A program made the position numbers and the translations under genes. 64,000 nt of DNA from Podarcis bocagei (Eukaryota), in the NCBI GenBank assembly GCA_964188305.1, contig OZ076896.1; one strand, 5' to 3'. The notes under the pieces were generated by a model. The model was not told where the DNA came from. It was given only the letters and a program-made list of their open reading frames with translations, and ran no database searches. Shown here in pieces: positions 1 to 63,407 of this stretch. How positions within the stretch are numbered: position 1 is the first letter of the stretch; the number at the start of each line of letters is the position of its first letter.

Positions 1-1894
1 AGGATCCTTCCACTCACCTTCCTCTCACCTGCTGTGATGTACATCTGAACTGCAGGATAGGGCAAGGGGACAGAAAAAAGATGCCTATACTGAGACTTGG
101 CCAGGAATCATACATGCAAACAGAAGTGAATGGTAAATACTGCAAAGTAGTATATTTCCGATTCCCTGATAATTTAGTCCATTGCTTTATCTTCAAATAC
201 GCTTTTGGCTTAGTTCCACTTGGTTAAACATGCAAGTATTTGGATTGAAGATGATGTGATCCTACTCAGTTCAATAGGATTAAACTGATATGAATCCAGA
301 TCCCTGAACTTTTTTTTAATGAGCTTTGGATTGGGCTCTTGGTCTTTTTGTGCTGCTGGCCTCTCCATTTTCTGAGTTCAGCTGCCCTGTGTTTTAAGAC
401 TGTTGATAGGACTATCAGAAGCTGCCTTATATCAAGTCAATTCCATTGGAACATCTAGCTCAATATTGTCTACTCTGACTGGCAGCTGCTCTCTGCAGTT
501 TCAGACAGGGAACATTTCCAGTCCTACATGAAGACACCAAGGATTAAACCTAAGACCTCTAGTCTACAAGCTATTTCAAAATTTTCTATTACTATTTATT
601 ATCTGCTTTGTTTTATAAGTGGAATTATTGTTTTCCCGGTATATGTGTACCCCCAATCCTAAAATCAATTAGATATAGGATTAGGATTATCAGTATTTAA
701 ATGAATGAATGGGCCTGTTCCAGTTTGGCAAACCCTGAGTCCCTTTGTTGTAAACGAAATGGTTCTCTGTTTGTTAGTAGTATTGAGAATATCAGTAGAA
801 AAGCTAATCAACCAAAACCCACCCAAATTCCTTTTGTTACAAAAATAAAAAAAATCTTACCCCTGTTTTGTAATTATTATGCTCATTTTTCAAGCAAATC
901 CGAATGGCAGCATCCTCTTCCCCCAAATTATATATTTTTATTTGATTAGCTCATGTCATCGAATCACTTCAAAGCTGTTATTTTGCCAATGTAAATGTTT
1001 AAGGGATGTTAATGTTTTCATGGTGAATTATTCCTCCTGCTGAAGGGAAAAGAGTATGGTTTAGTTTGCCTTGAGTCAGTGAGCTCTGGATGTAGCTGAA
1101 CATGTACCAGATGTGATTTATAGGGTTTGGTGGTGCAAGTGACATAAATCATGTGCTGCACACAGGTAAGGCAAGCGCCATGCTCACTGAGTTCATGTCA
1201 TAAAACATTTTAATGTTTCTGTCAGTGAACTTAATGCTCATCTCCAGACGGCAGGAACGGCATGGAATATTCAAGCAACAAAGAAGAAGGAAGGATGAGG
1301 AAATTAACCTAACATAAACTACATTAAAAGCATATTTATGATCTGGTATGACCTTTCAAAAGGAGAATAAATCTACAGCCTAAAGATCCCACTCTCATGA
1401 TTTTGGCCGCAACGGGGCATCATTCTTCAAGCAGCCAAAAACGATTAGGAGTTAGCCAAGATGAGGTGGGTGTCTTTCTTCCTAAATAACATTTTCAGTT
1501 TATCATTCCAGTGAAATATCTTTTTTTTCCCCTAAAGATGAAAAGTACGTATTTGCAAGCTTTGGGTTTATTTTATTTTTAAGTTAGAGTCCAATTAAAT
1601 ATGACGCTCAAGATAGGGGAGAAAAGAGCCAAGCCTGCTGTTTTTTGATTCACATTTGTCAAATAACAGCTCCCCTCGCTCCCCCACTGGCTTAAAAAAC
1701 AAAACATTGAGGGCTGTTTAAAAAAGCTGTTTGTGATGCGGCATTGAGGTTGGGGTTCTTCTATTTTTAAAAACATCAATTCTAAGCATATTTGCTCAGA
1801 AGCAAGTCCAACTATGGTTGTCTGTGTATGAATGGTTTAAACGCAGCTAGGTTGTTCTTTTCTCAATTTGGATTGAAGCTGATGGGGTGAGGGC

Positions 1895-2232
1895 AGACCC
1901 TCCAAGTGTCCCTACTTTCCAGGGACATCCCTGATTCAGAGAAGCCATTCTGGTTTCTGATTTGATCCCGGAATGTCCCACTCTTCCTTAGGATGTCCCT
2001 ATTTCCACTGGAGAATTGTTGGAGGTTATGGAATTATCCAACTCCCTGAGCCGTCTGAAGGCAATCTTGTATAGGGAAGGTTTTTTATGTTTAATATTTT
2101 ATTATGCTTTTATATATATATTGGAAGCTGCCCAGAGTGGCTGGGGCAACCCAGCAAGATGTGTGGGGTATAAATAGTAAAATTATTATGGAATGGGACA
2201 TCCCTATTTTCACTGGAGAAATGTTGAAGGGG
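1895..2232 (+). mobile_element. Non-autonomous DNA-transposon-like element containing an L2 3' end fragment
   Basis: Repeated TCCCTATTT(C/T)CACTGGAGAA motifs flank a segment (about 2050-2185) matching the L2 3' ends at 8.4 kb and 55.3 kb. Confidence 0.5.
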
Positions 2233-5187
2233 GGGAATGCATCAAAACACATTATTTCTTAAGAAGCAGAAAGGGTAGAGCATAGATATCAGCGATGGGA
2301 ATGTGCTGGATGCAGATTATATGAGAGTGAGTAATACACAGGCTCAGTTCAATGGGGCTTTCTCCCAAACCAGTATTTTCATGGAATCACAGTGAAGTGT
2401 GGGTGGGCTCAGGTATGACCCAAGGCCAAGATTCAGCTCCGAAAGGATTCATCACAACACCAGGAACAAGAAAAACAAGAATGACAAATAAGGGCACTTG
2501 GCCCAGTATATATACCTTAAGCCGGCCCAGTAAAAACACACACATCACCTGTGATAGGTCACCTTAATGCTGCAATTAGCGAATCACAACACTGACTGGC
2601 CCTATCTCAGCAGGGATTGGCTGCCTGCCAGCTACTAACAATGTCACTGGAGGGTTTTATAATCTTCTCTGTCTTTTGTTATGCCGATGAAGCTCCTGAG
2701 CTGCAGGAAGCCTGAAGACCTAGGCCTACATTGCATACAGCTTGGCTTCAGTCTACAATGGCTGCATACATAACACACAGCACGTTAAGGCCTTCTGCGG
2801 ACACAGTACAAGCCTTTGGGGGCAACTAAACATGCTCTCTAGATCCTCACAATATTAGCCGCCCCGGGGAGAAAGGTTGATTTAATTTAACTGTTTCCAT
2901 GGCTATGCTGTTTTCATTGTATCTTTTTGAATTTAAGGGTGTTTATTGTTCATCTTTGGATCACATTGTTGTGTATTTTAACTTTGCACGCCTTTATTTT
3001 TTTATAATAGTTTATAGTTGTAAACTGTAGAGTAGCCATTTTGGCAAGTATGTGGAATATACAACACAGTAACAACAACTACATATATAGAAGTGGGGCT
3101 AATTTTTGAAAGGGTGAGAATTTCTAGCCATACAAATTCAAACAGAGCACAATTCAGTGGACATAGTTAGGTATATAAGAGCATAAGAAGACCTGTGCAG
3201 GATTAGGCCAATGGCCCATCTAGTCCAGCATCCTTTTCTGACAGTGGCCACCCAAGCGCTTGTGGGAAGACCATAAGCAGGACTTGAGTTCGAGAACACT
3301 CTCCCTCCCTGAGGTTTGCAGCAACTGGTATTTCTATAAAGGAGACAGATTTGTTTGTAAGCTGAATGATGTCCATGTATGCATGAATCAGGCCTGACTC
3401 TTTATTCCCAAGTATACCAGAACCCAGCAGTCAGTGTGAAAGAACCAACAATGGTGTTGATAGCAAGCAGCAGCTTGGACAGCCTGTGAGCTCACGGTCA
3501 CACGATGTGTTTGCAAAGAAGAACTCGTTAGAAGTCCTTTGCATTCCAAAATCAGCCTCCCGGAAACAGCATGATTCTCTCTTTTTTCTCGCCTGCGCTC
3601 CTGGATGTGTGTATGAAAGATGCGCTGTTTATTTTTCTGGCACAGAGCTAACTTTAAAATGTGATTACTTTAATTGAAGAAAACATTTCCTGACAGCTTG
3701 AGAATCAACATTTGAAGCAAATCATCCCCATTTGCTTATAGGGAAGGCGAGTGCACTCTAGCCTGTTTAATCCCCCATGAATCGCAGGCGAATTCATGTT
3801 AACTGCAAAGCCATTTGGTTGCGAAAACAAAATGTTGCAGAGCCGTGTGAAACAGCTTGCCCTCAATTATACAGCTTTGCCCAGGCATAGTGTTTGGCTA
3901 ATTGTATTTATTTTGCAAAGGGTCTGGCATAATTCCTTTGAAAATTCTCTAGCAACACAGACATAATGCAGTGTGCTTTAGATGACTGGCTTGCAGTGGG
4001 AGAGAGAAAAAACCCTTTGTAATGTTCTCTGCATTGATCTGAATTGGTATGTGTGTGGGGAGAAGGCATATTCCTTAGACTCTAATGTGGGGCCCAAAAC
4101 ACAAATGCTCAGTTTTCGCAATGAAATTGAGCATCACCTGTTATGGTTGCCTTTGGATTGGTGTGTGTGTATGTGAATGACTTGCTCCTGTACTTTGAAC
4201 AGCAGCTTGATGTGTAGGAATTAGTGGGTAAAGTGTTTCATACATCTGCTAATGTTTGCATGTTAATTCATAGGAGCAGGGGCACATTATAATTTTTGCT
4301 GCTGCTGCTGCTGCTGCTGTTGTTATTATCATATCCCGCCCATCTGACTGGGTTGCCCCAGCCGCTCTAGGCAGCTTCCAACATATATACAGTAACAGCA
4401 TAATAAAACCCACAATTCTTTTACCACGTTATCCGTCATGGCTTCTACCAAATAATCCTTGGAGCTGTAGTGTTTTAAGAGTGCCAGGAATTGTAGCTCT
4501 GAGAGTGGGGGTCCTCCTAACTGCTGTCAACCCTCTTAACAAAACACAGTTCCCAGAATTCTTTGGGGGAAGCCATAACAAGTGGTAGACAAGTGCTTTA
4601 AATATCTGGAGTGGATGTGAGTGGTTGACGCTGTAAGAATGCATTCATGATGGATCATTGATACTGAACAGTCAATGCGTCACTCTGCTTTGTTAGTTGT
4701 GTTGTGGTGCCATTATTGTCATTTGGAGGGGCAGAAAACAAAACAAAATCACAACCACACCCAGAATATCTGTTGTATAAAAAGGTTACAAGTTGTTTAC
4801 CAGGAAGCTATGGGACAGACACCGATTAGAAACGGAAGCAATATGATCACCCTAAACCTTTTGCAAGTGCAAAAATGGGGTCGTGTGTAACTGCCCCAAT
4901 ACCATCATAAACACAAATCATCATGAATGGACAATTTTAAGAAGGGATGTCTTCGGGGGCCTTCAGAGTTGAGCAATGATTTGTACCTGGATTTCCCACA
5001 CTCAGATTCATTACTCTAGCCCCTACCTCCACACGCCCTCCAAGCTTTCCAAGGCAAATCCTTTTATTCCAGTGTAGTTTATCCCTTTAAACTTAGATGC
5101 ATAAGCTGTCCTGGTATAAAAGGCTCTTTGCTGATCATCACTGAGCTTTTCCATCTATAGCTGCAGATGAAACCTCAACATATTTAT

Positions 5188-18846: not shown

Positions 18847-19836
18847 GGTGTTGTTGTTTAGTCGTTTAGTCGTGTCCGATTCTTCGTGACCCCATGGACC
18901 AGAGCATGCCAGGCACTCCTGTCTTCCACTGCCTCCCGCAGTTTGGTCAAACTCATGCTGGTAGCTTCAAGAACACTGTCCAACCATCTCGTCCTCTGTC
19001 ATCCCCTTCTTCTTGTGCCCTCCACAGGGACGCGGACTTATAGAAAATATTGGGGGGGCCCGGGAAAGCTCATGAATAATAAATAAGCTCATGAATATGC
19101 AAATAAAGTGGCTCCGGCCCTAAATAGGGCAAGCCACGCCCCCCAGCCAGCCGATTGGCTGGCTGGGAGGTGTGGCCAGTCGGGATTCCCCTGTTCTCGC
19201 GGGGGCTGAAACCGCCAGGAGGAAGGAAATTCCCCCCGGCAGTGCCTTGGCAGTGGCGGTGGTGCTGCGAAGCAGCGAGGCAGGAGCCCCCGCCCCCGGG
19301 GATTCCCTAATCTCGCGGGGGACGGCCGGGGCTCTCCGACTAGGGCGCGCGGCTGGCTGGCTGGCTGGCGAGGGAGCAGGTGGGGAGGAGGCGGGGGACG
19401 GCGGCGGCGCTCTTCTGGAAGGGCGCCCGAGATTATTGGGGGGGCTGAGCCCCCCCAAAAAATTTTTTGAGGGGGCTCGAGCCCCCTCAGGCCCCATGGA
19501 GTCGGCGCCTATGGCCCTCCATCTTTCCCAACATCAGGGTCTTTTCCTGGGAGTCTTCTCTTCTCACGAGGTGGCCAAAGTATTGGAGCCTCAGCTTCAG
19601 GATCTGTCCTTCCAGTGAGCACTCACGGCTGATTTCCTTAAGAATGGATAGGATTGATCTTCTTGCAGTCCATGGGGCTCTCAAGAGTCTCCTCCAGCAC
19701 CATAATTCAAAAGCATCAATTCTTCGGCGATCAGCCTTCTTTATGGTCCAGCTCTCACTTCCATACATCACTCCTAGGAAAACCATAGCTTTCACTATAC
19801 GGACCTTTGTTGGCAAGGTGATGTCTCTGCTTTTTA
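18847..19836 (-). mobile_element. BovB/RTE LINE 3' fragment, interrupted by a hAT element
   Basis: Translation KVRIVKAMVF...YGSESWTIKKADRRRIDAFELWCWRRLLR; (CAA)n-type tail; 11-bp TSD ATAGTATAGGT (18836-18846 / 19837-19847). Confidence 0.93.
19025..19513. mobile_element. GC-rich non-autonomous hAT element (489 bp)
   Basis: 8-bp TSD GCCCTCCA (19017-19024 / 19514-19521); imperfect 14-bp TIRs CAGGGACGCGGACT / AGTCGGCGCCTATG (10/14 match). Confidence 0.85.
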
Positions 19837-21018: not shown

Positions 21019-22723
21019 GTTTGGCTCCATTAGCCTTTTGGGTCACTTTTAGCTGAAGCAAAGAGCTGAATATTTAACTATTTAATGGTCTATAGTGCTG
21101 TTGGTTTATATAGTTTCAATAGGTTTACATACAAAGTGTTCTGCTGGCTTGTGAAACCTTTTGAACTGCTATTTTAAATTGCTGTAATTAATTAAAGCAC
21201 TGTTTTTGTCATTTTAAACATAAGCTGCCTTCTGATGACTTTACCCTTTAAAGGTGGCCTACACAGCACTTGGAAAGCACTGTGCAAGGGACTCTGACAG
21301 GTAAGTAGGACAACCCAGCTGTCAAGCTTCTGACATCATAATGACATCGGGTTATTGACAGGTGGGTTGTCCCATCCACCTGTCAAAGTTGGTTCAATAA
21401 GGATCTGGCCAGAAAAATGTTCCTCAAGCCTGAATGGAGTATCCTTAACATAAATATTTCATGTTTCAGCATTTGTTGCAGGTCCCCCTTGTTTTGGTAG
21501 AAGTCCATTCATAAGTCTGAGCAGCTTCTTTCAGCCAACCATTCAGAAGCCCTGGGAACTGAATCAAAGTCCATAGCTCATGAAGGAAATGTGGTAATAT
21601 ATTTCATTTTGAACTGAATACAGAGAGCATACATTTGTTACACAATCTCCCATGAACTTTTTTGACTTTGATTATGCCCAAGATCGATGGGGGGATGTGA
21701 CACTTTCCCTGTAAACTCCGGTCACAGAAATTCATATCCATTTGTTGAGCTTTCTCAATGACTTAGTCAAAATGTTTTATCATATGGCCAATAAAACCCC
21801 AAATATCAAACACCCACTAGATCACACATATTTTTACACTTAGAAATTACCCATCCGTAGTGAAAACATTTTCTGATTGGTTTTTGGAATTCATGGGTAC
21901 AGAGACAGACAATAAAAATTTACAAGCACAGGAGTAACAGAAGCCTGAAATATCCAGAACATGTTCCTTGAACAAATAACATAATCCTTGGCACATGGGA
22001 GCACATGGTTTGCTTCAAACATGTTTCATTTTGTCATCGCACCGAGTGCACAATCTCTCTCTTTGGGTGCAAGAGTGATTGATGTCCTTGGAAGAGTTGC
22101 TTGCAAGAACGAACGCGCAAGTTGCCAAAGCAAACACATTGGAGAGACGTGTACAGAAAGGAGAGCAGCACTCTTTGGGCGCAGATCTTGGTTTGGGGAG
22201 TTCACACAGAGGTCAGACAGCGAGCAGCAGAACAAATACAAACACTCTGCACACTTCATCTAAATAAATTATATGCAAAATTTGGCCTTCAGTAGATGTT
22301 AACAGAGCATTTACCACCCTTCCCTTGTGCCCATGGAGAATGTGGGCAGAATGCCAGCTTTCCCCCAGCTAATGATTTATCACCACTCCTTTTCATGAAT
22401 GGATTTATTGAGATTAAGAGCTCTTCCATTTTATTCCCCTCAAGCTGTTGCCATTCCAAAACAGATGATGTATCTTCTGATGGAGTTACCCTCTGTCCTC
22501 AGGGTTCAGCACTGGCTTGCTGGAGCACATTATCACACGTCGTTTGACTTTGGCTAGGTTGAGCTGGCCAAAGGAAGCTTTCACCCAGTGCGTTGATCCA
22601 ACTTCCTTTTTTGAACAAATCAAAGCACCTCTCAGAAGAAGTAGGGATCTGAATATGCACCACATCTTTTCAGTGATGGTTTAGGGTTGGGTCAACTTAA
22701 AAATCATGCCAAACAGAAAAACT

Positions 22724-24822
22724 GGTGTGTTTTTATTTTTATTATATGATATTTATTGAAAATTTTTGAATTACAGAGAAAAAACAAAGCAGAAAAAGAA
22801 AAGAAAAAACAAAGAAAAAACAAACCACATCAAATAATACAAATTCAAAAAACAAAAATACACCGCAAACAGACAAAAATAAATCCATCATTCTCAAATC
22901 CTCAACTCTCATTACCTTCTTTCTTTGACCTCCTCCTCCTCCCTTTTTTTGTATCCTGGTTAATAATTATCACAGCAAATCCTTTCCATATTTCATAGTA
23001 TTCTGTCATTACATTACCATAATCTATTTTCATCTTATCTTATAGAAAACCACCTTAAATCTTATTTTTACCGACTTCTCACAACCATAATATTCTTACC
23101 TAATTCTTTAAACATTTTTGCTAGAGCCAAGTAATTTCGTTCCAACATTTTTCTAACATTCATCAATTTTATAAAACAATCCTGGTAATAAAAAGAGAAA
23201 CAAAAACAATCCGATCTTCATCCAGCGTCCCTTCCTCCTGGTCCCGGGTTTTGTCAGTCCTTTTTATCCCATCGATCTAGTGCATTAACCTGGTAACCTA
23301 ATATCCGAGGCCCTTAACTCTCTTCCATGTCCCTTCCGCAGCTCTTCTTCATATTCTCCTTTCACTCGTGGGAACTCCAGCTTGGTGATATTTTTGACCC
23401 TTTTCAACAAATCAGCCCCTTTTCCATAGTCCAGACTCAACTCCATGTGGTATTTAAAAACATGTTTCAGAATCCCTCCAAAATTGAGAGCCCCCACAGC
23501 TCCAAAAATCTCACGGCCCATTGCCAGACTCAGAAAGTCCAAACATCCCTGCATAGGGGGGGGGGGGTCTATCCAACCCCCCATTTCCAAACCAATCCAA
23601 ACTTTATCTTTCCAAATCTGGCTTTTTCCAAGTTCATTTGTCAAATCCAAAAGCTCATGTTCCTGCAAGGCCGCAGCTCCCTCCATCTCTGGCGCCCAAG
23701 ATTCAGCAACATCCTCTTCTCTCATCTGCTCTGTCAGGACACACTCCTGATCTAATTCCTGGGTGGGCTCCACATAGTTTCCCACTGCCTGTTCAAAAAT
23801 TCTGGCCACATTAGTCATCAAATCCATCTTCTCACTTAACTGTTCCAGTAGGGCACTTGTTTTACAGAGAGCATACAACAGAGCCTCTGAATACATTGTC
23901 CTACAAGGTCACAAGTTCATTCCCACGATTGTAATCTGAGACAGCTGCAAGCTCCCTGGAATTAGTTACAGTTTCACAGTCTCCCTCTAGGGGGAGAACT
24001 TCTATTTGTTGTTGCAATAAAGTATCCTTTTTGAGATATTTTGTCAATATTTGTTCCTTTAAAGTGCCAAAGGAAACAGTGGAATCACTATGTTTCTCTT
24101 CCTTTAACTATCTGTCAAAAACGTTTGTCTCTGGTCAATGAGCTTCAAACGTCAGTCCTGACACCCCGCTCCAGGATCAGGACAGTGGAAAGTTACTTTA
24201 CTTTAAACTCACTTCTGCAGGTTTAAACAGTCCAAAAAAGATCCCCCTTCTTCTCCTGCTGCCGAAGGGGGGGTTCAACAATTTTAAATGATGAAAGCCA
24301 ATCCTTTAAAAGCGATTTTCTGAGCTCTAGTTTACGTTGTCTTTGCCTTATTCTGTCTACAAAGAAACAGAAGGCTGACTTCCTGTTTAGACCTTCCCGT
24401 TTCAGTACCAAATTGAAGTAAATTTTTAAGTCCAATTCCTTTCTGCTCGTAAGTCCTTATTTAAAGTCCGATTGTTCAAAGTTTAATTACTCACGGGTGC
24501 TTATTTTAGAAGCCAAATTGTCCCAGGAAAAAGGCAGCGCTCTCCGGCAACGGCTATGCGGCTTCGCTCCACAGAAATAGCAGTTGACTCACAGCACCGC
24601 GCCACTTCCCCCTCTTCACTTCGGAGCCCATTAGTGGGTTCCTTTGCAGGTTGGGGGGGCGCTAAGGGTGCCCGCTGAGTCCCATGGTCACAGGCTTCAT
24701 CCGCCTGTGATTTTTAGCAGGGTCCCCGCTTCGCCATAGCGGAAAAGACCCGTTTCACACAGAGCTAGTCCCTCCAGTTCAGAGGGAGTCCGCCATTGCC
24801 GATGGCGCCACCCCAGAAGTCC
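22724..24822 (-). mobile_element. About 2.1-kb L1-like retroelement lacking ORF2 (HAL1-like / non-autonomous)
   Basis: 10-bp direct repeat CAGAAAAACT at 22714-22723 and 24823-24832; CpG-rich 5' end beginning GGACTTCTGGGGTGGCGCCATC; one 203-codon ORF; AT-rich 3' region with AATAAA and an A-rich tail on the minus strand. Confidence 0.7.
23285..23896 (-). CDS. 203-aa ORF inside the retroelement, possibly a divergent ORF1p derivative
   Basis: ATG-initiated, sense to the element, helical and acidic N-terminal half; no motif confidently recognised. Confidence 0.3.
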   Translation of the reverse strand: MYSEALLYALCKTSALLEQLSEKMDLMTNVARIFEQAVGNYVEPTQELDQECVLTEQMREEDVAESWAPEMEGAAALQEHELLDLTNELGKSQIWKDKVWIGLEMGGWIDPPPPMQGCLDFLSLAMGREIFGAVGALNFGGILKHVFKYHMELSLDYGKGADLLKRVKNITKLEFPRVKGEYEEELRKGHGRELRASDIRLPG

Positions 24823-27460
24823 CAGAAAAACTATTTTAGATGGCAAGCAAGAAATCAACCTATAGCAATTAAAAAGATCCACACAGCATCTCAGGGACAA
24901 AGCTTATAATTCTTCCAGGCATAGTTTTGTATGCGCATGGAGTTTATGTTGAGATACTTGGGAAATACAAATCATGTGATTTCTCCCACCAACAGATTGA
25001 TGCAGCACAGAGAATCCAAGCAAAGTTTTACCACCTGATCTACAGGTAGGGATTCTGTGGCCCTCCAGTTGGTGCAGGATTCCAGCTCCTATCAGCCCCA
25101 ACCAGCATGGCCAGTGCTCGGGGATGGTAAGACTTGTAATTCAACATCTGGAAGGAAACACCTCTGCTTTGCCCCTTCTTTCTTGTGTTCCCCAGAACTC
25201 TCCAGCTTGCTATAGAACATCCTTCCCCAACCTGGTGTCCTTGAGATTCACACAGGATATTAGTGACAAAGCTGTCTTAGAACGCTTCTCCCGGATATGG
25301 TTTTAGATGTGCATGGTATTTATGTTTTAATACTTAGGAAGGACAAAGCATGAAACTTTCCCCACCAACAGATTGGCATAGTGCAGACCATTTATTATTT
25401 GCAAGTTTTCCCACCTACTATGGGGAGGGGGACTTGTGGCCCTCCAGATGCTGCTGGACTCACAACATCCTCAGTCAACATGGTCACTGATCATGGATCG
25501 TGTCAACTGGAATCCAGTAGTACCTGGATAGCACTGGTTCCACACACCTCAACTCTAACATTTCTGCCTTTGGAGAGGAAATTGTAAATTTTAGTATTAT
25601 GAGATGTTGGGAGGCTGGATACCAGCTTAAGAATCTGGGAGACATCCCACACCAATATAGCCTATATGTTTTTTAAAAAAAATTGATCCTGTTTGGCTTT
25701 TTATTTTTTCCACATCAAACCGTATTGCAAAGAAATATTGATTAAAGGATAAATATAAATTAACACCCTCTGATGGAGATGGATTAAGGATTGCATCTAT
25801 AAATTAACATTTAAAACTCAGCTCCTGTCACACATGTGTGGGAGAAACATGAGCGTAATAAACAGACTGTGAAGCCTTTTAAGCAGAGTCAAAACACTTT
25901 TGCACTTTTGCAGGTTACTGGAAGCTAAGAGTTAGGCAATTACACCTTTTATCCCTGTTTATTTGTGGTCTGTTGCCTTCCCTTCTTTGTCCCCACTGCT
26001 AAGAATGAGTCACACATTTTAGTAAAAACAAAAAGGTTTACTTACATTTCAATGCAGGCAGCAAATACATCAAAGTCACATGCAAGTTAAAAAGTACTTA
26101 TTAGTTGCAAAATACAAAATTGGTTTCCAAAATGGAGTCTGGGCTTTGATAGGAGCCCAGCCATGTATGTCTGCTCACATTCCTGCCAAACATTAGGGAC
26201 CTTATACATTTGCTTCTATATTGATTCAGGAACTCTATGAGTGTCAGCCCCTCATGTGCCTGTCTGGCAATCATGCATTTGTGATTTTGATTGGAAATCC
26301 TACACCCTCTTCCGCCCTTGAATAGTATTTCAAGATTCAGATTACATATATTTAAAGCACAATATATTCTATGCATAGAATGAATAATCTTCTATTTTAT
26401 TTATTTAGTTATAACATTGTATTTGATATACTATAATATATATTATGCAATACTAATGTTTCATTTACAGCCTTCTTTGTTTTATATAACCTGTAATCCA
26501 GACCAACACCTGAAGAAGAAGCAGGGCTTTTGAGCATGCACAGAGTGCAGGTCCCTAACCACCAAGTCACTACAGCCAACTCCCACGCAGAACTGGGGTT
26601 AGAGAGGAGAGCTGCCCAGGGCCTGACCCTCCAGCATTTTTTTTAAGAAACCCAGCACAATCCAACAGACCTTCTGTGCCTTTGGAGCACCCCTATCAGG
26701 CAGGTATTCATCAGGTGCATCTTTACCCCGGCATGGAGTTGCTTTGATGGGGGAGCCTTGACTTGCTCCGGTCCCTCTTCTTCCCCATGCACCCACCCAA
26801 TCCGACAGCTGCTAAACTGGGGGCATAGTAACTGAGCCCACCCACTCCCTCCCTCCCCGGGAGCAAAGGGGTCAGCAAGAACGATCTGAGTGGAACTGGG
26901 CCAAAGGCAGCAACAAGCTGAAACTCTCTCTCTCTCTTTCGTGCGCCGATCTCCAAAGGCAGGCAGAAGCAAATTGCTCCCCAGCGACCGAAAAGCAGCT
27001 CGGCTCAACCCTTCTTCGGATTTTATTCCTCCCCGGGCGAGCTCGAAGAATCCGCCCTTTTATTTATTTTGGTTTGTTTTCAGTGTTTGCCTTGCAATTA
27101 TTTGAAACAGCAGCGCGGAGGGGAAAGAGACAGGAGGTTACGAGGGTGCTTGGGAAGGGAATGTTCGGCTCGCGGCGCTCCCAGGCCCCGGCATTCTGGC
27201 CTGCGCGCCCGCCTCGCCAAACCCAGCAAGCAGGCGATCCAGGGACGCGTCGTGCCGCAGAGCCAGAAAAAGGCGAAGCGGCCTTCAGTCCATTTGAGTT
27301 CCTCGGGAGGAACGAGCCTGGAAATCGAAGCCCTGGGCTTTTCTATAGGGCAGGGTGGGACCCTGGCTCAGTGGTAGGACAGCTGCTTGGCAGGCAGAAG
27401 GAGGTTCCGGAGTCAACCCACCTGCCCCAAATACTGAAGAGCCGCTGACACCATGTAGAT

Positions 27461-27877
27461 GTTGTTTAGTCGTTTAGTCGTGTCCGACTCTTCGTGACCC
27501 CATGGACCAGAGCAGGCCAGGCACTCCTGTCTTCCATTGCCTCCCGCAGTTTGGTCAAACTCATGCTGGTAACTTCGAGAACACTGTCCAACCATCTCGT
27601 CCTCTGTCGTCCCCTTCTCCTTGTGCCCTCAATTTCTCCCAACATCAGGGTGTTTTCCAGGGAGTCTTCTCTTCTCATGAGGTGGCCAAAGTATTGGAGC
27701 CTCAGCTTCAGGATCTGTCCTTCCAGTGAGCACTCAGGGTTGATTTCCTTCAGAATGGAGAGGTTTGATCTTCTTGCAGTCCATGGGACTCTCAAGAGTC
27801 TCCTCCAGCACCACAATTCAAAAGCATCAATTCTTCGACCTTCTTTATGGTCCAGCTCTCACTTCCATACATCACTA
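27461..27877 (-). mobile_element. BovB/RTE LINE 3' fragment
   Basis: WCWRRLLRVPWTARRSNLSILKEI...YFGHLMRR...VTKSRTRLND; TSD ACCATGTAGAT / ACCACGTAGAT (27450-27460 / 27878-27888). Confidence 0.93.
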
Positions 27878-34735: not shown

Positions 34736-36956
34736 TTTGCCTGTAGGTGCTTAGTTTGAACTGGGTCATACCCACAGAACAGAAACCATATTATGTGGGA
34801 CTTCATTCAGTGTAAGCAGGTATATTGTAAGCGCCTGGGAGGAGGGACGTGTACTGCTGGTTGTGTTATTCCTTCCCTACGGTTAGTGCCACGTGCATGG
34901 ATCTAGAATCAACAACTTAACTTAGATTGAACCGGTTGGCTTATCGTGCTGCGTGAATTGTTACAATGACCCGCCCTTGGTATTTAGGCGAGCATTATAG
35001 TCATATTGAATGCAAAGGGCTTTCAAGTCCAAGCAAGGCTGATGTTCAGCAGTTGGTGTAAGATGCTGAAGGTGAAAAATTTAGAAGTATTTATATGAAG
35101 CAACATAAAGCATAAGCTACATAGCATAAAAATTCTCCCCGATCCGCATTACAGGAGCCCTCAGCTCCCCCCAAAATAATTAATGATAGTAATGAATACT
35201 TCTGTTTGTTCGTTGACAGCAATGCCTCTCAAAATTCGGTTATACATTCGTTTAAACTAATCTTTACAACAGTACCGTGGGCTATTATTTTATCTTCACT
35301 GAAGTGTGTTGCCGCCTGTCTAGTCCTGTGTAAATAGCACTAAGAATGTTTGCAAACTGTCGGACTATTCCGATTCTTTCCTCCTTCACCATATTTCGCG
35401 GGGTACCGCTGGACTCGCGCGCGCCTGGACCTTTTAGGGGGGGGGGTAATGTTGCTTCTTCTTCCATAGCCTCACAAAGCGCAGGAGAATCGCCACGCCC
35501 ACCCGCCCTGATAAACGTTGCGCGCTGCCAGATGAGACGCCGGGGAGGTCTTTCGCATCCCGCTGGCTGGTGCGTTTCTAGCAAAGGGAGTTGCGGGCGG
35601 GGGGAAGCGGCGCGGGTGATTTGCGGAATGCTGAGCCTGGGCTATAAATCAGCCAGGAAGGAGGGCGAAGCAGGTGTAAAAACAGAGCGAGAACTGCCTG
35701 CTTCCCGGCAAGACTGGCGAGGGAGGGGATCCCTCTTCTGCCTCACCAAATGCCACCCCGAACGTGCAGCAACAGCAGGCCGCGCCTGGATGGAGGCGGG
35801 GATCTCGAGGCGCTGTAGGAGGAAGCTTCGCCTCCTTGCCCCGCCCGCGAACATGCCAATGCGCAAACAGCAACAGCATCAAACCCTCCTGCGGGCGCTT
35901 GGGGGTTGGCCTGCCAGTGCCTCCACCCAACTCTCCCATCTGCCTTCGCCACCACGCCTCCCACCCTTCACCCGGGGAGATTACGCAATCCGACCAGAGG
36001 GAAACCCCCAGCGACCAGCGTCCAATGCCGGCGCACTAGCCCAGCCACGACACACGCGACCTTTTCCTACCTTCTTCGCACGCAAGGCGCTCTCTCGCTC
36101 TCCCACTCGCTCTCCTCCCTCCATTTCTGTGGCCAGGATTCCTCCCCACCCCCCGCTTCCTTTTCCCAGGCATTGCTCAAAGATTAGGCATAATTCTGCG
36201 CACCGCCTGTTTTTCCAGCAGCAAAGGAGAAAGAGAAGATCCACAGTCCCGTTAAGTCGAAGGGGTTGGATTTAAGAGGATCATAGGTTGCAACGAGGAC
36301 TCCATTGGCTTTGATCCAAATACCTTGACTTACTTGGGCTCTATTTGCCTTCGACTGTTGCCGCTGTTTTCTTTACTGATGCCCAGGCCCTAACCTCAAC
36401 TGCTTTGAAGTAAACCTAGGTAAGACCCTCCCCGCCGCCAGAAACATTCCCAATCAGCCCATTCCTAGTCATCGAAGTCATTCCTAACTATGCGGTGTCC
36501 CAACGACTTCCAAGGAAACTCCAAGCGAATGAGAAGCTTAGGATTGTGAGCTTAATTGCATCCATAAACACGCGCGCGCCTTATTCCTTATTTATTTCTA
36601 TTAGATCCATTCCTTTATTTAGAGATAAATAGAGGCTCCTGTTTAATTAAAAATGTGGTCAAAGCGAGAGATTGGAATTGGGAACGTGCTGTGAGTTAGG
36701 TACATTTGGGGCCATTGTATTCCGTGGACACGGGAATCAGCACAGATGTGTAGGGTGGAATCTAAGGCTCCAGGTGCTCATTTGTATCCAAAGTGCACTG
36801 AACAACAGTGTATGCCACAACCGAAGGCTGCAAGAGCGTGAAGTCCAGCAGTTCCTCAAAGCCTCCAGCAGGGCTTCAGACTAAGGTCGCTCCCAGCCCC
36901 GCCTGGAGATGCCAGAGCAATGCTCTGACCACTGAGCCCATCTTAGGTCCTGGATG

Positions 36957-37125
36957 CAGTGGCGTAGCGTGGGGGGTGCAGGGGGGGCCGGCCGCACCGG
37001 GCGCAACATCTGGGGGTTAGGGTTAGGGGGTGCAAATCCACGGGTTAGGGGGCGCAAATCCACGGGTTAGGGGGCGTAAATTACTTGCCTTGCCCCGGGT
37101 GCTGACAACCCACGCTACGCCACTG
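36957..37125 (+). mobile_element. hAT MITE (169 bp) with internal TTAGGG-containing tandem repeat
   Basis: Perfect 17-bp TIR CAGTGGCGTAGCGTGGG; 8-bp TSD CCTGGATG (36949-36956 / 37126-37133). Confidence 0.92.
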
Positions 37126-40100
37126 CCTGGATGCCGCTGGCCTCGACGTGACTTTCGCCCACGTGACAGTGCAAAAGACCTGGCCTGACTGTGCTTAGGA
37201 TCCAATCGCTTCCAAATAAAAATATCTAGCACACGCTGCTGCAAAGGCACCTATTTGCCTGAGTGAACATCTGTTTCCTTGCTGTTAGGGCTACTGGAGC
37301 TTACACCCTTTCCCCGGTGGCTAGCTACTGGATTTTAAAATTTGGGAGCCCGGTGTGCGTAGGTGCGTGTTTCGCATTGAAAAATATACCGATTTGTGGT
37401 AGCTTAAACTAAGAACAAGGTGGTCCTGTCTCTTCTGTGTCTGGGCTTCCAAAACCTTCCCCAGTCACCAGCCTCCAGGGTTTCCCTGCGCCGCTGTAGA
37501 AGAGAGCGCCGAGCTCCAAGCGCCGAGGCGAATGAACGGCGTCTGTCCTTTCATCCGAAGAGCGTCTGGGAACACGTGGGGTGGATCGCGGATCTGCCAC
37601 GCGTCGCGAGAGACCCTCTTTCCTTCCCCCTATCTGTTCTGTAGGCGCCCGGTGTTAGGCAGCTCAAACCGTAATCAAGACTCCAAGAGAAATAGATAGC
37701 AGCGGGGGAAGCGAAAAGCGTGTAGCGGGAAACGCGCAAGAAAAACCAAGGAGGTGTAGGTCTGGCCTTATGCAGCCAACCCTTCCAGTAAGTTCTCCTT
37801 CCCTTGAGGGCGGCCCAGTTGGGGTTCGATTGCCCAAATTAGGAGCCCTAATCGGCACAGGTCAGTAGGATGGGGATAATGGACCGAACTCTGCAGAGAC
37901 TTCCTGTGGCTGGATCTGGTGTTGTATGTGGGTGAAGGTCTGGTGGGGGGGATTGTTTGTTTGGAATTTTTACTTTGGGGTTATTTATCGGTGTAATAGG
38001 GTTTATATTATTGTGTAAGAAAGTTTACTGTCTGATGGGTTGTTTTTGCTGTTGCTGTTTGAGGTTTACCTATTCTGTTCAAATAAATATAGTTCCCCTC
38101 ATATATTGACTACCAAAGATCCTTTAAAGAACCCGCAGAGTTAATTGGCACAACAAAGCGAAGGCTTTTTAAAAAATGCATTTAGAAAACAATCAAGGAG
38201 GAGGGAACCTGTCAAAAGTCCTCGTCAACTTTCTGGCAAAAGTACACCACGGGGGACTCGCGGGCCAGAAAGGCAAGAAACGGAAAGCCCGGTTAGATCA
38301 TTTTCTCAGGACATTGTTTATGGCCTTGGGAAGGATCAATCGTTTCGAAATGTTGCCAGGAGGAGAAAGAGAGAGAGAGAGAGAGAAATGATCCGGAGTG
38401 GAATGCGACTAATCCTCTGGATTCCTGTCAACGGTTTCCATAGAAGGAAGCCGATTTTTCAACCCAAAGATCCAGATTTTGTTTGGCCAGGGATTTGTGT
38501 GAGCTCCTGAGGCCATGAATTCGTCGTCCTCCGCCTCCGAGCCCCACTCCCCAAATAGGAGAACCTGCTGCTCTCTCTGAATACCTGTCTTGGGTGTAAA
38601 GCACATGCTTGCCGAGACTGGGTTTGACTGCAGTCTGTAAAAAGACTCACCCCAGAGCACTCCGGCTGAAGGCAATCGGATTGTTACCCAGGCGCAATGT
38701 ACACACACACACACGCTCACAGCACACTTATCCCGTGCTCTAACACGACTACAAACATTAAATCAGCTTGGCATCTTAGAGCTGTAAGTTTTGGGAGAGA
38801 CAACCCGGAAGTAATCTAGTCGAAACCCCCCCCCCCCCTGCTCAGGGCCAGCGAGTCTCTGCAACTCTAACCCCACTTACCTGGGAGGAAGCCCCGTTGA
38901 AGTCCATAGGTATTCCTTCCGAGTAGACATGGTTTAGATTGTGCTGGAAAGCGAAGTTCTGCTGTGATTCACGGTTTTAGAAAATATGCATAGGATCCGA
39001 CTGGGGTGAAGTTAGTCTGAAAGTAAGTTGGAATCAATGGCATAAGCAAATGTGTTTCCGCCTTGCTGTTTTTATAAACGGATTCATAAGTGAGGCATGG
39101 AGTCTACCCGTAGACGTTCTAAGAACAACTGTTTGAAAGTTTTCTCCGTGCTAAAAGCTGACTTTTTGGAAGCCAGCTACAAACATAAAGGAAGCTATAA
39201 CAAGCCAGCCCGTGCACACACGTTAATCCAGACTCTTTGGGTTTTAAACCGGATCATATATTTTCATCCCAACCCCGACTCGACAAAGAGCACAATTTTT
39301 GGGGTCTGCCCATTGAAATGAATGCCAGTGGAGAAGAAGATGGAGCGATTTGTTTCAAGGGAGTTTTGCGTTAGAACATTTCCCACTGAATTGGGCTTCT
39401 AAAAACCCATTTCCCCAAAAAACTAGTTTTCTTTTACTGTTTTTAAACCCTTTATAATTTACTCTAGCATGTTGATTTTTCTTGTAGAGTCTGCCCTATC
39501 ACTGAAGGCTTAAAGCAACCTGACTTTCCCCCTCTTCCGGCAACCCTGTTGTTTGGTAGACTGAGAGCTCCTGCCCTGAGATGGTCAGAGGAGAACATCA
39601 GGCATGTAATTTTTTAATAAGATAAAATAAAATAAAATAGGGCCTTCTTTGTGGTGGTGCCCGCATTTTGAATGTTACGCAGTTCCATTGTCCCTGAGCT
39701 GTATTTTTGTACACTGCTTAAATATTAATAAGTTTGGAGATGTGTTTAAATAAATAATACTCCTGGCACCAATCCTGTATTCTTTAGAGTGCCAGGTTAA
39801 AACCATTTTATTTGCCAATGTATTTTAGATGATGGTGTTTGTTGAATGTTTTATTATATTGCTGGTTTGTGTTATGTTGTATAATGTGTGTGTTTTTTAA
39901 TGTCTCTCCATACCACCCTGAAATTTATTTTTGAATGGTTTCGCAGTTGTTGGTTTATCGTTTCTAAACACTATTTGGTTTATCGTTTCTAAAATGAAGA
40001 AATAAAATTAAGGCAGGACCTTTACATAAATGGGATTTATTTCCGAGTAAACACACATTGAATTACACAGTTGCAGGTGATTTCCTCAAGTCAACCAAGT

Positions 40101-52870: not shown

Positions 52871-54211
52871 TTAACAATTGGAAATCCTAGCAGTAAAGTT
52901 CTCGACGTTGGCCAAGGCTGCCCCTTGGTGCAGAGTCCCCAGCGAGGCGGCGACGGAAGAGGACGGAGGCGGCGGCGAGGCGAGCGCAGGCGACGAGGCC
53001 ATCAGGGACCTGGCCAGGACCGGCAGAACGGCCGCCTGCGAGGCGCAGCTGCTGGCGGCCAGGGGACTCAAGCCACCGCCGCCGCCGGCGCCGCCGATGA
53101 TGCTCTCGATGGAGAAAGGCGACCTGGCCAGCGCCGAGCTGCTGCTCTTGGCGGCCGCCGCCTGCAAGGAGGCCGCGAGAGACGGGCTGAGCTGCGCCGG
53201 GTAGCCGAAGCTGGTAGTCCTGGCCAGGTCGGCCGCAGGAGAGGCGGCAGCGGGAGGCAGCAGCGCGGGCGGCGCAGCCGGCAGGACGGGCCCGGCGGCC
53301 GGAGGAGGCGGCGGCCGCGCCTGGGGCTGGAAGGCGAAGAGAGCCGAGGGAGGCGGGTAAGGCGGCAGCTGCAGGCCGTAGGCGCAGCTATAGGGCCCGT
53401 AAGCGAAGGGGGCAGGCGGAGGCGCGGGCGGCGGGTGCTGCTGCTGCCGCGGCGGCGGCGCCTGGTTGGGGTGTTGCTGCGCCGCTTGGAGGAAGGCGGC
53501 GGCGGCGGCGGGCTCGAGCCCCCTGAGGAGCAGGTCGGGCGGCTGCNNNNNNNNNNNNNNNNNNNNNNNNNNNNNNNNNNNNNNNNNNNNNNNNNNNNNN
53601 NNNNNNNNNNNNNNNNNNNNNNNNNNNNNNNNNNNNNNNNNNNNNNNNNNNNNNNNNNNNNNNNNNNNNNNNNNNNNNNNNNNNNNNNNNNNNNNNNNNN
53701 NNNNNNNNNNNNNNNNNNGCCACGCGGGGAACTTCTCGCGGTAGTAGGGGAAGCGGGCGCTGATGAACTCGCAGATCTCGCTCAGCGTCAGGCGCTTCTT
53801 GGCGCTCTGCAGGATGGCCATGGTGATGAGGGCGATGTACGAGTAAGGCGGCTTCACCAGGCTGTTCTTGGCGCCCGCCGAGACGCCGGCGCCCCCTGAG
53901 GCGCTTCGGAAAGAGCCCTGAGGGGAAGAAGAAGAAGAGGAGGAAGAAGACGAGGAGGAGGAGGAGGAAGGCGACCCGGAGCCGGGGGACTCTCCTCCTG
54001 GCCCGCGCGCCCCGGGCGCCTCAGGCAGCGAGGCGGCCTCCTCGTCCTCGTCCTCCTCGTAAGGCCGGCGGCGGAGGGGCTCGTCGTCGTCGTCCTCGTC
54101 GTCCTCGTCGTCTCCCTCGTCGTCGTCGTCGTCCCCCTCGCCCACCACGTCGATGTCTGTCTCCTCAGCCAAGGCAGACGCGGCCTCGGACATCTCCGCG
54201 CTCAGAGTCAT
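52871..54211 (-). CDS. FOXD1: Forkhead box protein D1, single exon
   Basis: ATG at 54211 gives [25 protein letters not shown] (FoxD1-type N-terminus), then an acidic tract, the forkhead start [17 protein letters not shown]...[24 protein letters not shown], an eh1 motif FSIESIIG and the FOXD1-type C-terminus [11 protein letters not shown]. The track's start at 54256 is a non-ATG extension. N gap at 53547-53718. Confidence 0.96.
53547..53718. other. Assembly gap (172 N) in the FOXD1 forkhead domain
   Basis: N run. The frame is preserved across it (58 codons), compatible with the roughly 54 conserved residues QNSIRHNLS...RRRKRFKR plus a few more. Confidence 0.95.
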
Positions 54212-54930
54212 CGCGGGGCGCAGCCGGGCATGGGAGGAGGGGGCTGCCTGGCACAAGGCTGGCGGGGCGGCGAGGGGAGGGCGCCCCGGCTGGGCTCACA
54301 CGCTTCGCCCCCCGCCGGCCCGCCCGCCCGCCCGCGCTCCCGCCTTCACGCCACGGCCGGAGAAGACAGCGGCGCGAGCGAGGCCGGCGGCGACCAGCCT
54401 CTCCAGCTGGGCACCTCCTCGGCGCTTCCCTCTTCCTCGTCGTCCTCCTGAGGAGAAGGCGCTTGCTTGCTGCTGCCGCCGCCGCCGCCGCCGCCTCCCT
54501 CAGACATGAATGGGTCCAGGGTGGGAAAGGGAGAGCGACTACTATTGGGGAGGGAGAGCGGCGGGCGAGGCGGGCGGGGACGGGGTGGGGGGAAGAGGAG
54601 GAGGAGGAGCGGGCGGCGCCCGCGAAGTCTTGAGCAAGATCTTGGCAGCGCCCGGGCTGAGGCCGAAAGGGGGCGGCCTTTCCTCCTGCCCGCCCGCCCG
54701 GGAGGGGGCCGTCACGTGGCTGGAAACGTCACAGCCGCCGCTGAGAAAACATTCCAGGAATAAAAAAAGAAAAGAGGCGTGCGGAGGGGGGTGGGAGAGA
54801 GAGACTCGGAATTGCGAGCGGGAGAGGAGAGCAAATAAATAAATAAGCGCCCATCTCGCGCCTTGAATAGCCCCATTGTTGAGTTTTAGGGTGGCGGAGG
54901 GAGCCGGGAGAGGCAGCCCTTCCATCTCCA
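54212..54930 (-). promoter_or_regulatory. FOXD1: FOXD1 5' UTR and CpG-island promoter
   Basis: Very GC/CpG-rich. CCAAT (minus, 54544-54548), GC boxes, E-box GTCACGTGGC at 54711-54720, forkhead-like TATTTAT/TATTTGC cluster at about 54831-54846. TSS not determinable. Confidence 0.75.
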
Positions 54931-58723: not shown

Positions 58724-59184
58724 CGGGCCCGCAGGGAGCGACGGGCTGCTGCGCGAAACTTGACCGGTCTCACCGAGGGCGAATGCAAGTCAGACATTAA
58801 AAAGCATTGCCATTAGGCGTCCTCACGGCAGATTGCTTTAGACGCCTGTTGAAAACCGCTTTGCTTCTGTCAGCCTATCCAGACGCACGATGGGAGTTAG
58901 TCCGGGAGTGTAACCCGAGGGTTTGCCAAGCATATTGGAGTCAGAGCGGTGTGGTGTTTAGAGCGTTGGAATAGATGGTCAATTCTGCCCTCAGCCAAAC
59001 ACTATATTCATGCGTAAACCAGGGGCGAAACGAGGCTTTATTTCACACGGGTCAAAGACTAACTTTGGCACCCTCCCACGCGCAGCGGGAACCTCTGGAG
59101 GCTTCACCCAGGGCAAAAAACCTGGCTAGCTCCCCCCCCCCCCCGCCTAAACTACCTTACAGGGTTGTTGTGAGGATAAAATAT

Positions 59185-60082
59185 TGTTGTTGTTTAGTTG
59201 TGTCCGACTCTTCGTGGACCAGAGCATGCCAGGCACTCCTGTCTTCCACTGCCTCCCGCAGTTTGGTCAAACTCATGCTGGTAGCTTCGAGAACACTGTC
59301 CAACCATCTCGTCCTCTGTCGTCCCCTTCTCCTTGTGCCATCCATCTCTCCCAACCTCAGGGTCTTTTCCAGGGAGTCTTCTCTTCTCATGAGGTGGCCA
59401 AAGTATTGGAGCCTCAGCTTCACGATCTGTCCTTCCAGTGAGCACTCAGGGCTGATTTCCTTAAGAATGCAGAGGTTTGATCTTGCAGTCCATGGGACTC
59501 TCAAGAGTCTCCTCCAGCACCATAATTCAAAAGCATCAATTCTTCAGCAATCAGCCTTCTTTATGGTCCAGCTCTCACTTCCATACATCACTATTGGGAA
59601 AACCATAGCTTTAACTATATGGACCTTTGTTGACAAGGTGATGTCTCTGATTTTTAGGATGCTGTCTAGGTTTTGTCATTGCTTTTCTCCCAAGAAGCAG
59701 GCGTCTTTTAATTTCGTGACTGCTGTCACCATCTGCAGTGATCATGGAGCCCAAGAAAGTAAAATCTCTCACTGCCTCCATTTCTTCCCCTTCTATTTGC
59801 CAGGAGGTGATGGGACCGGTGGCCATGATCTTCATTTTTTTGATGTTGAGCTTCAGACCATATTTTGCGCTCTCCTCTTTCACCCTCATTAAAAGGTTCT
59901 TTAATTCCTCCTCACTTTCTGCCATCAAGGTTGTGTCATTTGCATATCTGAGGTTGTTGATATTTCTTCCGGCAATCTTAATTCCGGCTTGGGATTCATC
60001 CAGCCCAGCCTTTCGCATGACGAATTCTGCATATGTTAAATAAGCAGGAAGACAATATACAGCCTTGTCGTACTCCTTTCCC
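59185..60082 (-). mobile_element. BovB/RTE LINE 3' fragment with disrupted RT
   Basis: GIKIAGRNINNLRYANDTTLMAESEEELK (catalytic YADD reads YAND) plus frameshifts; (CAA)n tail; inserted into a MIR-like SINE core. Confidence 0.93.
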
Positions 60083-60990
60083 AAATATGTGCGGCTTTTT
60101 TGGGGGGCGGGGAGAGAAGTCATTGGAGGAAGAATGCATGAAAACGCCTCCTGCAACATGGTGATGAAACATTTGGACAACAGAGTCCTTGTCTCTTCTT
60201 GTTTTTGACTTGCTTCCTATTCCTTCATCCTTAGGTATGTGAGCTACATTATTTTCTTATTAATAGAAATGCAGAAACAAAGTAGGACATTCCAGTTTTC
60301 ACAAAGTTTACAAGCAATTATTTCACAGGAGAGTGTTATTGAAGCAGAAAAGTTAACTTAATTTCTCTGATTTCTAACCTACTGCATATAAAAATGATAC
60401 AAACTGATGAAAAACAGTATAGCGTATTGGGGTTTACTGCTTCCGCAATACTTCATTAAATGTGTTCCAAACCTGTTTTTCTTCTCCAGTATGTTAGGTT
60501 TGCCATGAGAGTGTAGTAGTCCCATAAATATCCAACCAGTCCTTCATAATATGCTGACTCCATTCTTCTTGCATAAAGTATTCCTGTCCACACCATAATA
60601 TCCTAGCAGCAAGAGACTCCAAGGGTTCCAGGGTTTGGTTTCCTCGAACACAAGGTCAATAGAGACTGTGGTGTCTTAAGGATAAATTGTTTTATTTACA
60701 CATATATACAACCTGAACATAGGGTGGAGGGACCCCAGCCGAACTTGCTTCCCTGTGAAGTTTCCAGGGAAGCCCCAACCACAGCCAACCCCAACCATGA
60801 ACACATGTACAAACTGACAGACAACCAAGTTACAAAAACATGTAGAATTTCAAGCAATTAATGCACACTACCCCATGGATCTACTCCTGAATGGACATGC
60901 ATAGAATTATGTTGTGAGGCCATTTTATGCAGACCCTGATGGTCCTATGAAGTTTTACTCAGTGTGGGAATATGCACATAGTAAGGAAAA

Positions 60991-63288: not shown

Positions 63289-63407
63289 CAGTGGCGTAGC
63301 GTGGGGGGTGCAGGGGGGGGCGGCCGCACCGGGCGCAACATCTGGGGGTTAGGGGGCGCAAATTACTTGCCTTGCCCCGGGTGCTGACAACCCACGCTAC
63401 GCCACTG
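63289..63407 (+). mobile_element. hAT MITE (119 bp), short form of the 36957 element
   Basis: Same 17-bp TIR; 8-bp TSD CACAATTG (63281-63288 / 63408-63415). Confidence 0.92.

Follow-up and report, generated by a model that had tools for sequence, protein, structure and literature searches.

The 64,000-nt stretch of Podarcis bocagei DNA analysed here (assembly GCA_964188305.1, contig OZ076896.1; hereafter the window) carries a retroposon unit of 2,099 bp on the minus strand at positions 22724-24822. We regard it as very probably a complete and recent insertion belonging to an abundant family of non-autonomous poly(A) retroposons in lacertids, one that depends on L1 elements. The family has an architecture like that of HAL1 (half-L1), yet its single open reading frame (ORF) is not recognisable as the L1 protein ORF1p. 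In the summary of Kojima 2018 (PMC5753468; from Smit 1999 and Bao & Jurka 2010), mammalian HAL1 is described as a non-autonomous L1 derivative encoding ORF1p only.

Organization of the element

The unit is enclosed by a perfect 10-bp target-site duplication (TSD), CAGAAAAACT on the plus strand, one copy of which lies beside the 3′ tail at 22714..22723 and the other beside the 5′ end at 24823..24832. Read on the minus strand, the element opens with a non-coding leader (5′ untranslated region, UTR) of 926 nt at 23897..24822, which begins with GGACTTCTGGGG (24811..24822; GACTTCCGGGG in the other copies, the window copy showing a CpG>TpG change). The leader contains only short upstream ORFs, whose frames are broken and unconserved among copies. 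Its first ~300 nt (24523..24822) form a CpG-rich head marked out by conservation, read depth and a predicted RNA fold, with a GC content of 0.59-0.61 and a CpG observed/expected ratio of 0.65-0.70. The ORF of 203 aa (stop counted) occupies 23285..23896; its ATG has an A at -3, and it is the sole sense-strand ORF of more than 80 aa in the unit. An antisense ORF at 23327-23755 was considered and rejected, as diverged copies do not keep it open. The 3′UTR (22724..23284, 561 nt) is AT-rich and includes a pyrimidine-rich low-complexity tract at ~22770-22860. The polyadenylation signal AATAAA, at 22752..22757, sits inside the conserved TTCAATAAATATCAT, and the degenerate A-rich tail (22724..22745, sense ATAATAAAAATAAAAACACACC) terminates in ...AAAAACACACC. 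The final letters of this tail, CACACC, are not pure A and are atypical.

An earlier note made from the letters of this DNA had described a 10-bp TSD, a CpG-rich 5′ end, a leader of about 0.9 kb, an intact 203-aa ORF and a 3′UTR of about 550 bp with AATAAA and an A-rich tail; the measurements above agree with it on each of these points. It had also seen no endonuclease or reverse transcriptase, and indeed Pfam gave no match to either in the ORF or in ten further sense-strand open stretches. Rfam gave no match within the element at E up to 1. The element therefore lacks the ORF2 with APE endonuclease and reverse transcriptase that defines an autonomous L1. Nor does it fit the definition of a short interspersed element (SINE), namely a non-coding element with a tRNA, 7SL or 5S head and a Pol III promoter, as it is 2.1 kb long and has an ORF under selection.

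Family copies and insertion marks

Relatives were found by a word search with the ORF, which returned, in lacertid data only, two 'hypothetical proteins' of Podarcis lilfordi together with several Logan contigs. Three complete P. lilfordi copies share both ends with the window copy. The first, L001, on a chromosome, is 93.9% identical to element bases 2-2087, and its flanks show no match. The second, L002 (contig CANTUW010000783.1), is 82% identical, with the match beginning at base 2. The third, L005, is ~69% identical, with the match beginning at base 1 and the order of head, leader, ORF and 3′UTR kept. All three have the same start position, and both the leader and the 3′UTR of the window copy align with theirs. 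In each, AATAAA is followed 12-18 nt on by a pure A7-A13 tail, with signal and tail placed as in the window copy. Paralogous copies align from element base 1 or 2 inward, and their flanks do not align.

Each copy has its own TSD: GTATGACTCA[C/A]GCGA for L001, GAGATGAG[T/C]G for L002 and TCTATGGCGTGT for L005. Across all four complete copies, the window included, the TSDs measure 10-19 bp and the flanks are unrelated, and three of the four (L001, L002 and L005) sit at TTTT/AA-like target sites. The pure poly(A) tails, TSDs and TTTT/AA-like sites of these three copies are the signature of L1-type target-primed reverse transcription. Three features expected of a HAL1 were found: L1-type insertion with poly(A), a TSD of variable length and a TTTT/AA-like target; a multi-copy family amplified by itself, to judge from unrelated loci at 94%, 82% and ~69% identity and from the depth reported below; and absence of an ORF2 with endonuclease and reverse transcriptase. 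The earlier note had allowed that the element might be single copy or a simple internal deletion of a known L1. The former is excluded by the three copies at unrelated loci with TSDs of their own, and a deletion product made only once is contradicted by a 2.1-kb architecture that recurs across subfamilies down to ~69% identity.

Two observations concern the loci of these copies. On L002, a public 14-exon 'hypothetical protein' model (P0004) at 476-5042 is stitched together from the leader, ORF and 3′UTR of the decayed copy and from downstream repeats; it is a spurious gene prediction caused by the retroposon family. On L005, a tandem C2H2 zinc-finger ORF of 401 aa with HTGEKP linkers (1866-3068) ends 17 bp upstream of the TSD-bounded copy.

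Abundance and age of the insertion

The contigs of four public runs (X1, X6, X15 and X19) were mapped on 22224-25322. The two DNA runs, X1 from organism A and X6 from organism E, placed 2,932 and 4,916 contigs on this stretch, respectively. In X1 the summed depth over the element was 5,000-50,000, as against ~14 in the flanks, and in X6 it was 18,000-330,000, as against ~40-100. Summed depth is not copy number and is informative for the order of magnitude only; on that scale, copies with at least 90% identity would number in the hundreds to thousands.

At the 5′ end, the X1 depth fell from ~30,000 to 19 between the bins 24720-24823 and 24824-24927 (24823/24824), and contigs of organism A spanned both junctions with 0-1 differences, which makes A the species of the window. 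An X6 contig of organism E fuses 22713 to 24823, and the 10 letters at its joint fit either side; this is an empty site with one TSD copy. A contig of X15 (organism J) fuses 22711 to 24849, again an empty site. Because paralogues match from base 1 or 2, the depth collapses at the junction and the empty site joins exactly, the boundaries of the unit are not a product of chance. Between the flanks in X6 and those in the window there is a difference of only ~1%. Considering this together with the empty site in X6, the insertion either postdates the separation of two close relatives or is still polymorphic. The head of the window copy carries CpG>TpG changes (GACTTCTGG for GACTTCCGG; CTGTGTG for CCGCGCG), a mark of some decay since insertion.

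In X19, a run of organism E guessed to be RNA, the head, leader and ORF were covered and the distal 3′UTR (22724-23159) had zero depth; the same region is the deepest in the DNA run of this organism. The gap reflects either an early end of the transcripts or a failure to assemble the AT-rich UTR.

Selection on the encoded protein

Ten family members align from end to end, at 27-92% identity to the window ORF. The protein has an N-terminal heptad helix (residues ~4-41) with a conserved a/d pattern, an acidic middle and a basic C-terminal third, the isoelectric point (pI) being 9.2-9.6 for that third and 4.8 overall. The C-terminal end, RD[LI]RASD[IL]R[LS]PG, is near-invariant (…RDLRASDIRLPG-stop in the window) and unchanged despite many synonymous changes, indicating that it is selected as a peptide. 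A run of 10 C in the sense strand (23550..23559) encodes PPPP where the other copies have PP; this in-frame 6-nt expansion is private to the copy or its subfamily, and the X19 contigs are without the 6 letters at 23556.

Pairwise ratios of nonsynonymous to synonymous substitution (dN/dS) were 0.34-0.55 by Nei-Gojobori, 0.35-0.72 by LWL85 and YN00, and 0.48-0.66 by maximum likelihood (ML) in six of the seven pairs; the seventh, window-L005 (dS 10.2, ratio 0.08), was set aside as saturated. Fisher tests gave p ~1e-6 in four of six pairs tested and 6e-4 and 0.05 in the two closest. Along the protein, dN/dS is uniform. Four lineages with saturated synonymous sites (dS >1) all keep the ORF open between the same start and stop, a pattern that ascertainment alone cannot produce. 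Decayed copies are also present: L004 has acquired a stop, and L002 and L008 carry frameshifts, which is usual for a transposon. By these ratios, the protein of the ORF is under selection. ORF integrity and dN/dS, which the earlier note had proposed to check, were assessed on individual copies and came out in favour of a selected ORF, which is open in four deeply diverged subfamilies and has a dN/dS of about 0.35-0.65 by four methods.

Search for relatives of the protein

Neither the ORF nor 10 diverse members of the family gave a Pfam match, and no Transposase_22, RNA recognition motif (RRM) or C-terminal domain (CTD) was detected even at E up to 1-10. A profile search of the PDB returned noise only (E at least 0.2), with ORF1p absent from the matches, and a feature search of the ESM Atlas, done twice, gave no usable match. 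HMMER, run exhaustively against 1.84 billion representatives, yielded five proteins of 174-251 aa, each of which either belongs to the family or is a mis-spliced gene model spanning a copy. A word search with a wider profile returned the family only, as did one with the last 52 aa, which covers proteins of ~110-350 aa and so not full-length ORF2p. No L1 fragments were found in the window or in the fetched loci, where the pieces of reverse transcriptase are of CR1 and BovB type, and we found no report of HAL1-type elements in squamates in the literature searched.

AlphaFold2 (AF2) runs with 4 and then 10 sequences gave a mean confidence (pLDDT) of 35 and then 40, with residues 4-41 at 55-68; the predicted structure is helical and has no beta strands. 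The earlier note could assign the ORF to no family, and these searches bear it out. In the comparison with L1 ORF1p that it had suggested, only the N-terminal heptad helix is compatible with ORF1p; there was no signal of an RRM or CTD and no confident AF2 fold. HAL1 is defined by an L1 ORF1p of the Transposase_22 type with coiled coil, RRM and CTD, and of these only the helix has a compatible counterpart here. The assignment to HAL1, to which the earlier note had appealed, cannot be upheld in the strict sense, the defining ORF1p not having been detected. The family is HAL1-like in architecture, but its protein shows no recognisable similarity to the ORF1p of HAL1.

A conserved and possibly folded head

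In the aligned copies, the family begins with (G)GACTTCCGGGGTGGCGCCATCGGCAATGGCGG. The start GGACTTCCGGGG...ATGGCG resembles the published consensus of Anolis clade-1 L1, GACTTCCGGTG-N8-ATGGCG, the comparator being Anolis and not a lacertid L1. In Anolis, the 5′UTR of these 'clade 1' L1s is long (~1.3 kb), CpG-rich and unusually conserved between diverged families; its best-conserved part is the first ~120 bp, with GACTTCCGGTG-N8-ATGGCG at the 5′ extremity (Boissinot & Sookdeo 2016, PMC5381506). In the present family, the ATGGCG core (24791..24796, sense nt 27-32) is invariant in five of five aligned copies, and an inverted GCCAT lies ahead of it at 24801-24806. By analogy with the L1 literature quoted in PMC5381506, the two are candidate YY1-type sites. 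The head would thus correspond to the head of an L1 5′UTR, for which the evidence is good but indirect.

The head alignment comprised five copies (window, L001, L002, L005 and L006), three of them close and two diverged. The first ~345 nt are the best-conserved part of the element between subfamilies, at 92.7% identity with L002 and 71.5% with L005, compared with 85% and 62% for the ORF, and the read depth is highest over the head. RNAalifold on the five copies predicted 100 pairs, including a 21-bp closing helix between nt ~10-32 and ~272-296. Twelve pairs were compensatory; shuffled alignments gave 3.9 +/- 1.5 (0 of 500 reached 12) and slid controls 0-5. The window head alone had a minimum free energy of -136.9 kcal/mol (z -3.47). 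This covariation is suggestive of a folded head, as modelled.

The motif ACCCGTGAGTA (nt 325-335) closes the conserved head in all subfamilies examined, and within it a GTGAGTA resembling a 5′ splice site (24488..24494, nt 329-335) is invariant in all five copies of the alignment. An intron running from this donor to the TAG/G ahead of the ATG was considered and rejected: the acceptor is unconserved in L005 and L006, and no splice joint occurred among the contigs. The CpG-rich head may contain an internal promoter, as the earlier note had supposed.

Alternative explanations

The label 'full-length L1-like' would rest on the 5′ motif, the poly(A) tail and the TSDs. Of the proposal in the earlier note, a lizard non-autonomous, protein-coding L1 parasite, the element retains the non-autonomy, the coding capacity, the poly(A) and the L1-type marks and start; similarity to ORF1p went undetected. 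Several points weigh against reading the element as an L1-dependent retroposon with a selected protein and a functional head. The spacing from GACTTCCGG to ATGGCG is unlike that of the Anolis consensus. In the window copy, the tail (…CACACC) is atypical and the nick site non-canonical. We infer the shared head, the partner L1 and trans-mobilisation from the 5′ motif and the insertion marks. The head structure comes from five sequences, two of them diverged, and was predicted and tested on the same sequences. With a pLDDT of 35-40, AF2 yielded no confident fold, and any role for the protein is therefore conjecture; the protein is also acidic overall (pI 4.8), unlike an RNA-coating ORF1p. The copies studied closely were all found via predicted proteins and are for that reason a sample biased in favour of open ORFs, and the nucleotides of the ORF are no better conserved than the UTRs, because of which we call the protein selection only moderate. 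Finally, the 'RNA?' label of X15 and X19 is a guess; the runs could be DNA, and X15 also covers unique flanks.

The strongest competitor is a HAL1 in the strict sense, in which the 203-aa ORF would be a cut-down and strongly diverged L1 ORF1 (its N-terminal and coiled-coil region, perhaps fused to the final codons of ORF2), making the element a lizard half-L1 independent of the mammalian ones. Architecture and L1-type start agree with this, the helix at 4-41 with its a/d heptads resembles the ORF1p coiled coil, and the depth peak over the last ~27 codons could mean a segment common to other L1-related families. Moreover, ORF1 is so variable in its N-terminal and coiled-coil part that this cannot be aligned even among L1s (PMC5381506), and for this reason the failure to detect ORF1p is weak evidence. 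Against it stand the lack of any Transposase_22, RRM or CTD signal in 10 members at E up to 1-10, the absence of ORF1p from the PDB profile matches, and the HMMER and word searches, including that with the C-terminal 52 aa, which returned the family alone or a mis-spliced model (174-251 aa in HMMER). The acidic protein, predicted to be helical without beta strands, also speaks against it. We consider a strict HAL1 a real possibility, though one that we would not favour.

The other explanations fare much worse. That the copies are L1-made retropseudogenes or retrogenes of one or several lacertid cellular mRNAs, with no self-propagating family, would account for the mRNA-like layout with its CpG-island-like 5′ end, one ORF, AATAAA and poly(A), and for one transcription start and one poly(A) site common to all copies. 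However, the depth implies of the order of a thousand copies, the young TSD-intact insertions come from lineages 6-31% apart and would need several diverged source genes, and the start agrees with the L1 5′ consensus. In addition, the protein search, which covered 1.84 billion representatives, found neither a homologue beyond the family nor any relative that is longer or spliced, and hence no intron-containing parent and none of the vertebrate orthologues expected of a host gene; retrocopies are very improbable. Mobilisation by a LINE of a non-L1 clade, such as the CR1 or BovB/RTE elements present in the window and in L002, seems equally improbable. It finds agreement in the CR1 and BovB reverse-transcriptase fragments at the same loci and in the CACACC that ends the window tail, but L001, L002 and L005 all have a pure poly(A) tail 12-18 nt past AATAAA, their 10-19-bp TSDs at TTTT/AA-like sites are the L1 signature, and the window showed no CR1 or RTE element with a 3′ end like that of the retroposon. 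Least probable of all is a single event in which an ordinary L1 underwent an internal deletion, leaving a dead-on-arrival product that did not propagate itself. The L1-type start, poly(A) and TSD would suit it; the same 2.1-kb layout at unrelated loci with separate TSDs and unshared flanks, down to ~69% identity, does not, nor do the high copy depth and an ORF maintained by selection.

Comparison with known retroposons

The family resembles HAL1, as far as the latter is described in the summary cited above, in comprising non-autonomous, protein-coding, multi-copy poly(A) retroposons without ORF2, with TSDs and with a dependence on L1 ORF2p in trans that is likely here, and in being long-lived with subfamilies of its own. 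It differs in that HAL1 has a recognisable L1 ORF1p, whereas the lizard ORF matches neither ORF1p nor another protein, and in its host, HAL1 being mammalian and the present family lacertid. With the clade-1 L1s of Anolis carolinensis (PMC5381506) it shares a long CpG-rich 5′UTR unusually conserved between diverged families, a 5′ extremity of GACTTCCGG... followed by ATGGCG, and many diverged lineages active at once. Unlike them, it has no ORF1p or ORF2, measures 2.1 kb instead of ~6.4 kb, contains one CpG-rich block instead of two and differs in the spacing of the 5′ motif.

Like L1 ORF1p (type II with coiled coil, RRM and CTD; Pfam Transposase_22), the lizard protein combines a heptad helix at the N-terminus, suited to multimerisation, with a basic C-terminal part, and it is encoded by the first ORF after an L1-type leader, here the sole ORF. 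However, it has ~200 aa instead of ~330, a pI of 4.8, no detectable RRM or CTD and no predicted beta structure. Alu and SVA are also parasites trans-mobilised by L1, as this family appears to be, which compete for ORF2p with a success set by RNA features, and the folded head may, by analogy, play the role of the SRP-like fold of Alu. The lizard element differs from both in being mRNA-like, probably transcribed by Pol II and protein-coding, and in having no small-RNA-derived head (Rfam blank).

Other features of the window

A second high-copy repeat lies ~200 bp off the 5′ side of the element, at 25032-25135, with a depth of 3,772 in X1 and 33,372 in X6 as against ~10-100 around it. It is probably a SINE-type element and is flanked by a direct repeat (24910-24999 and 25286-25375, 76% identity). 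Three copies of another repeat, 82-98% alike, lie at 19392-19836, 27460-27836 and 59172-59656; judged by its translation, RIDAFELWCWRRLLRVPWTARRSN, this is the C-terminal end of a BovB/RTE-type LINE. An RVT_1 fragment was found at 59611-60180 on the minus strand. A GC-rich ORF at 52871-54256, also on the minus strand, contains a Forkhead domain (Pfam E 6e-15) and is an exon of a FOX-family gene, so that the retroposon lies ~29 kb from a gene for a developmental transcription factor. Two copies of a short element resembling a miniature inverted-repeat transposable element, with inverted ends TGCAGTGGCGTAGCGTGGGG ... CCCACGCTACGCCACTGC, lie at 36955-37126 and 63287-63408 and are 98-99% identical.

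Proposed mechanism and significance

In the mechanism that we propose for an L1-dependent family, an mRNA-like transcript would start at the first base of the element, the G of GGACTTCC. The CpG-rich head probably bears promoter elements downstream of this start, and each new copy would then bring its promoter with it. The transcript would be polyadenylated at its own AATAAA, and the endonuclease and reverse transcriptase of an autonomous L1, the likely source of the enzymes, would act on it in trans by target-primed reverse transcription. Such copying would leave the poly(A) tail and the 10-19-bp TSD that are observed at the insertions. Two element-specific parts, the ~300-nt folded head and the ~200-aa protein, appear to have been retained through long divergence. 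The protein may multimerise and coat or mark its own RNA, as ORF1p does for L1, and protein and head together, acting in cis, might help the RNA to compete for L1 ORF2p.

More tentatively still, and with less confidence than we give to a strongly diverged ORF1, the protein could be a new retroposon-encoded factor, captured or arisen de novo and not a remnant of ORF1. Acting with the covarying head and the near-invariant C-terminal peptide …RDLRASDIRLPG-stop, such a factor would enable an mRNA-like transcript to capture L1 ORF2p; one way would be to keep the translating ribosome or nascent ribonucleoprotein at the 3′ end of its own RNA. If the protein is such a factor, the family would represent a class of protein-coding L1 parasites separate from both HAL1 and SINEs.

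An L1-dependent family of this kind would mean that protein-coding L1 parasites are not a mammalian peculiarity, since the wall-lizard family numbers about a thousand copies and is still inserting, the site being empty in close relatives. With a folded head of ~300 nt and an orphan protein of ~200 aa, it would offer a compact natural system for what an RNA needs to compete for L1 ORF2p. Copies are at present annotated as 'hypothetical protein' in P. lilfordi, and a curated family entry would clean lacertid annotations. Those insertions that vary between species are ready phylogenetic markers.

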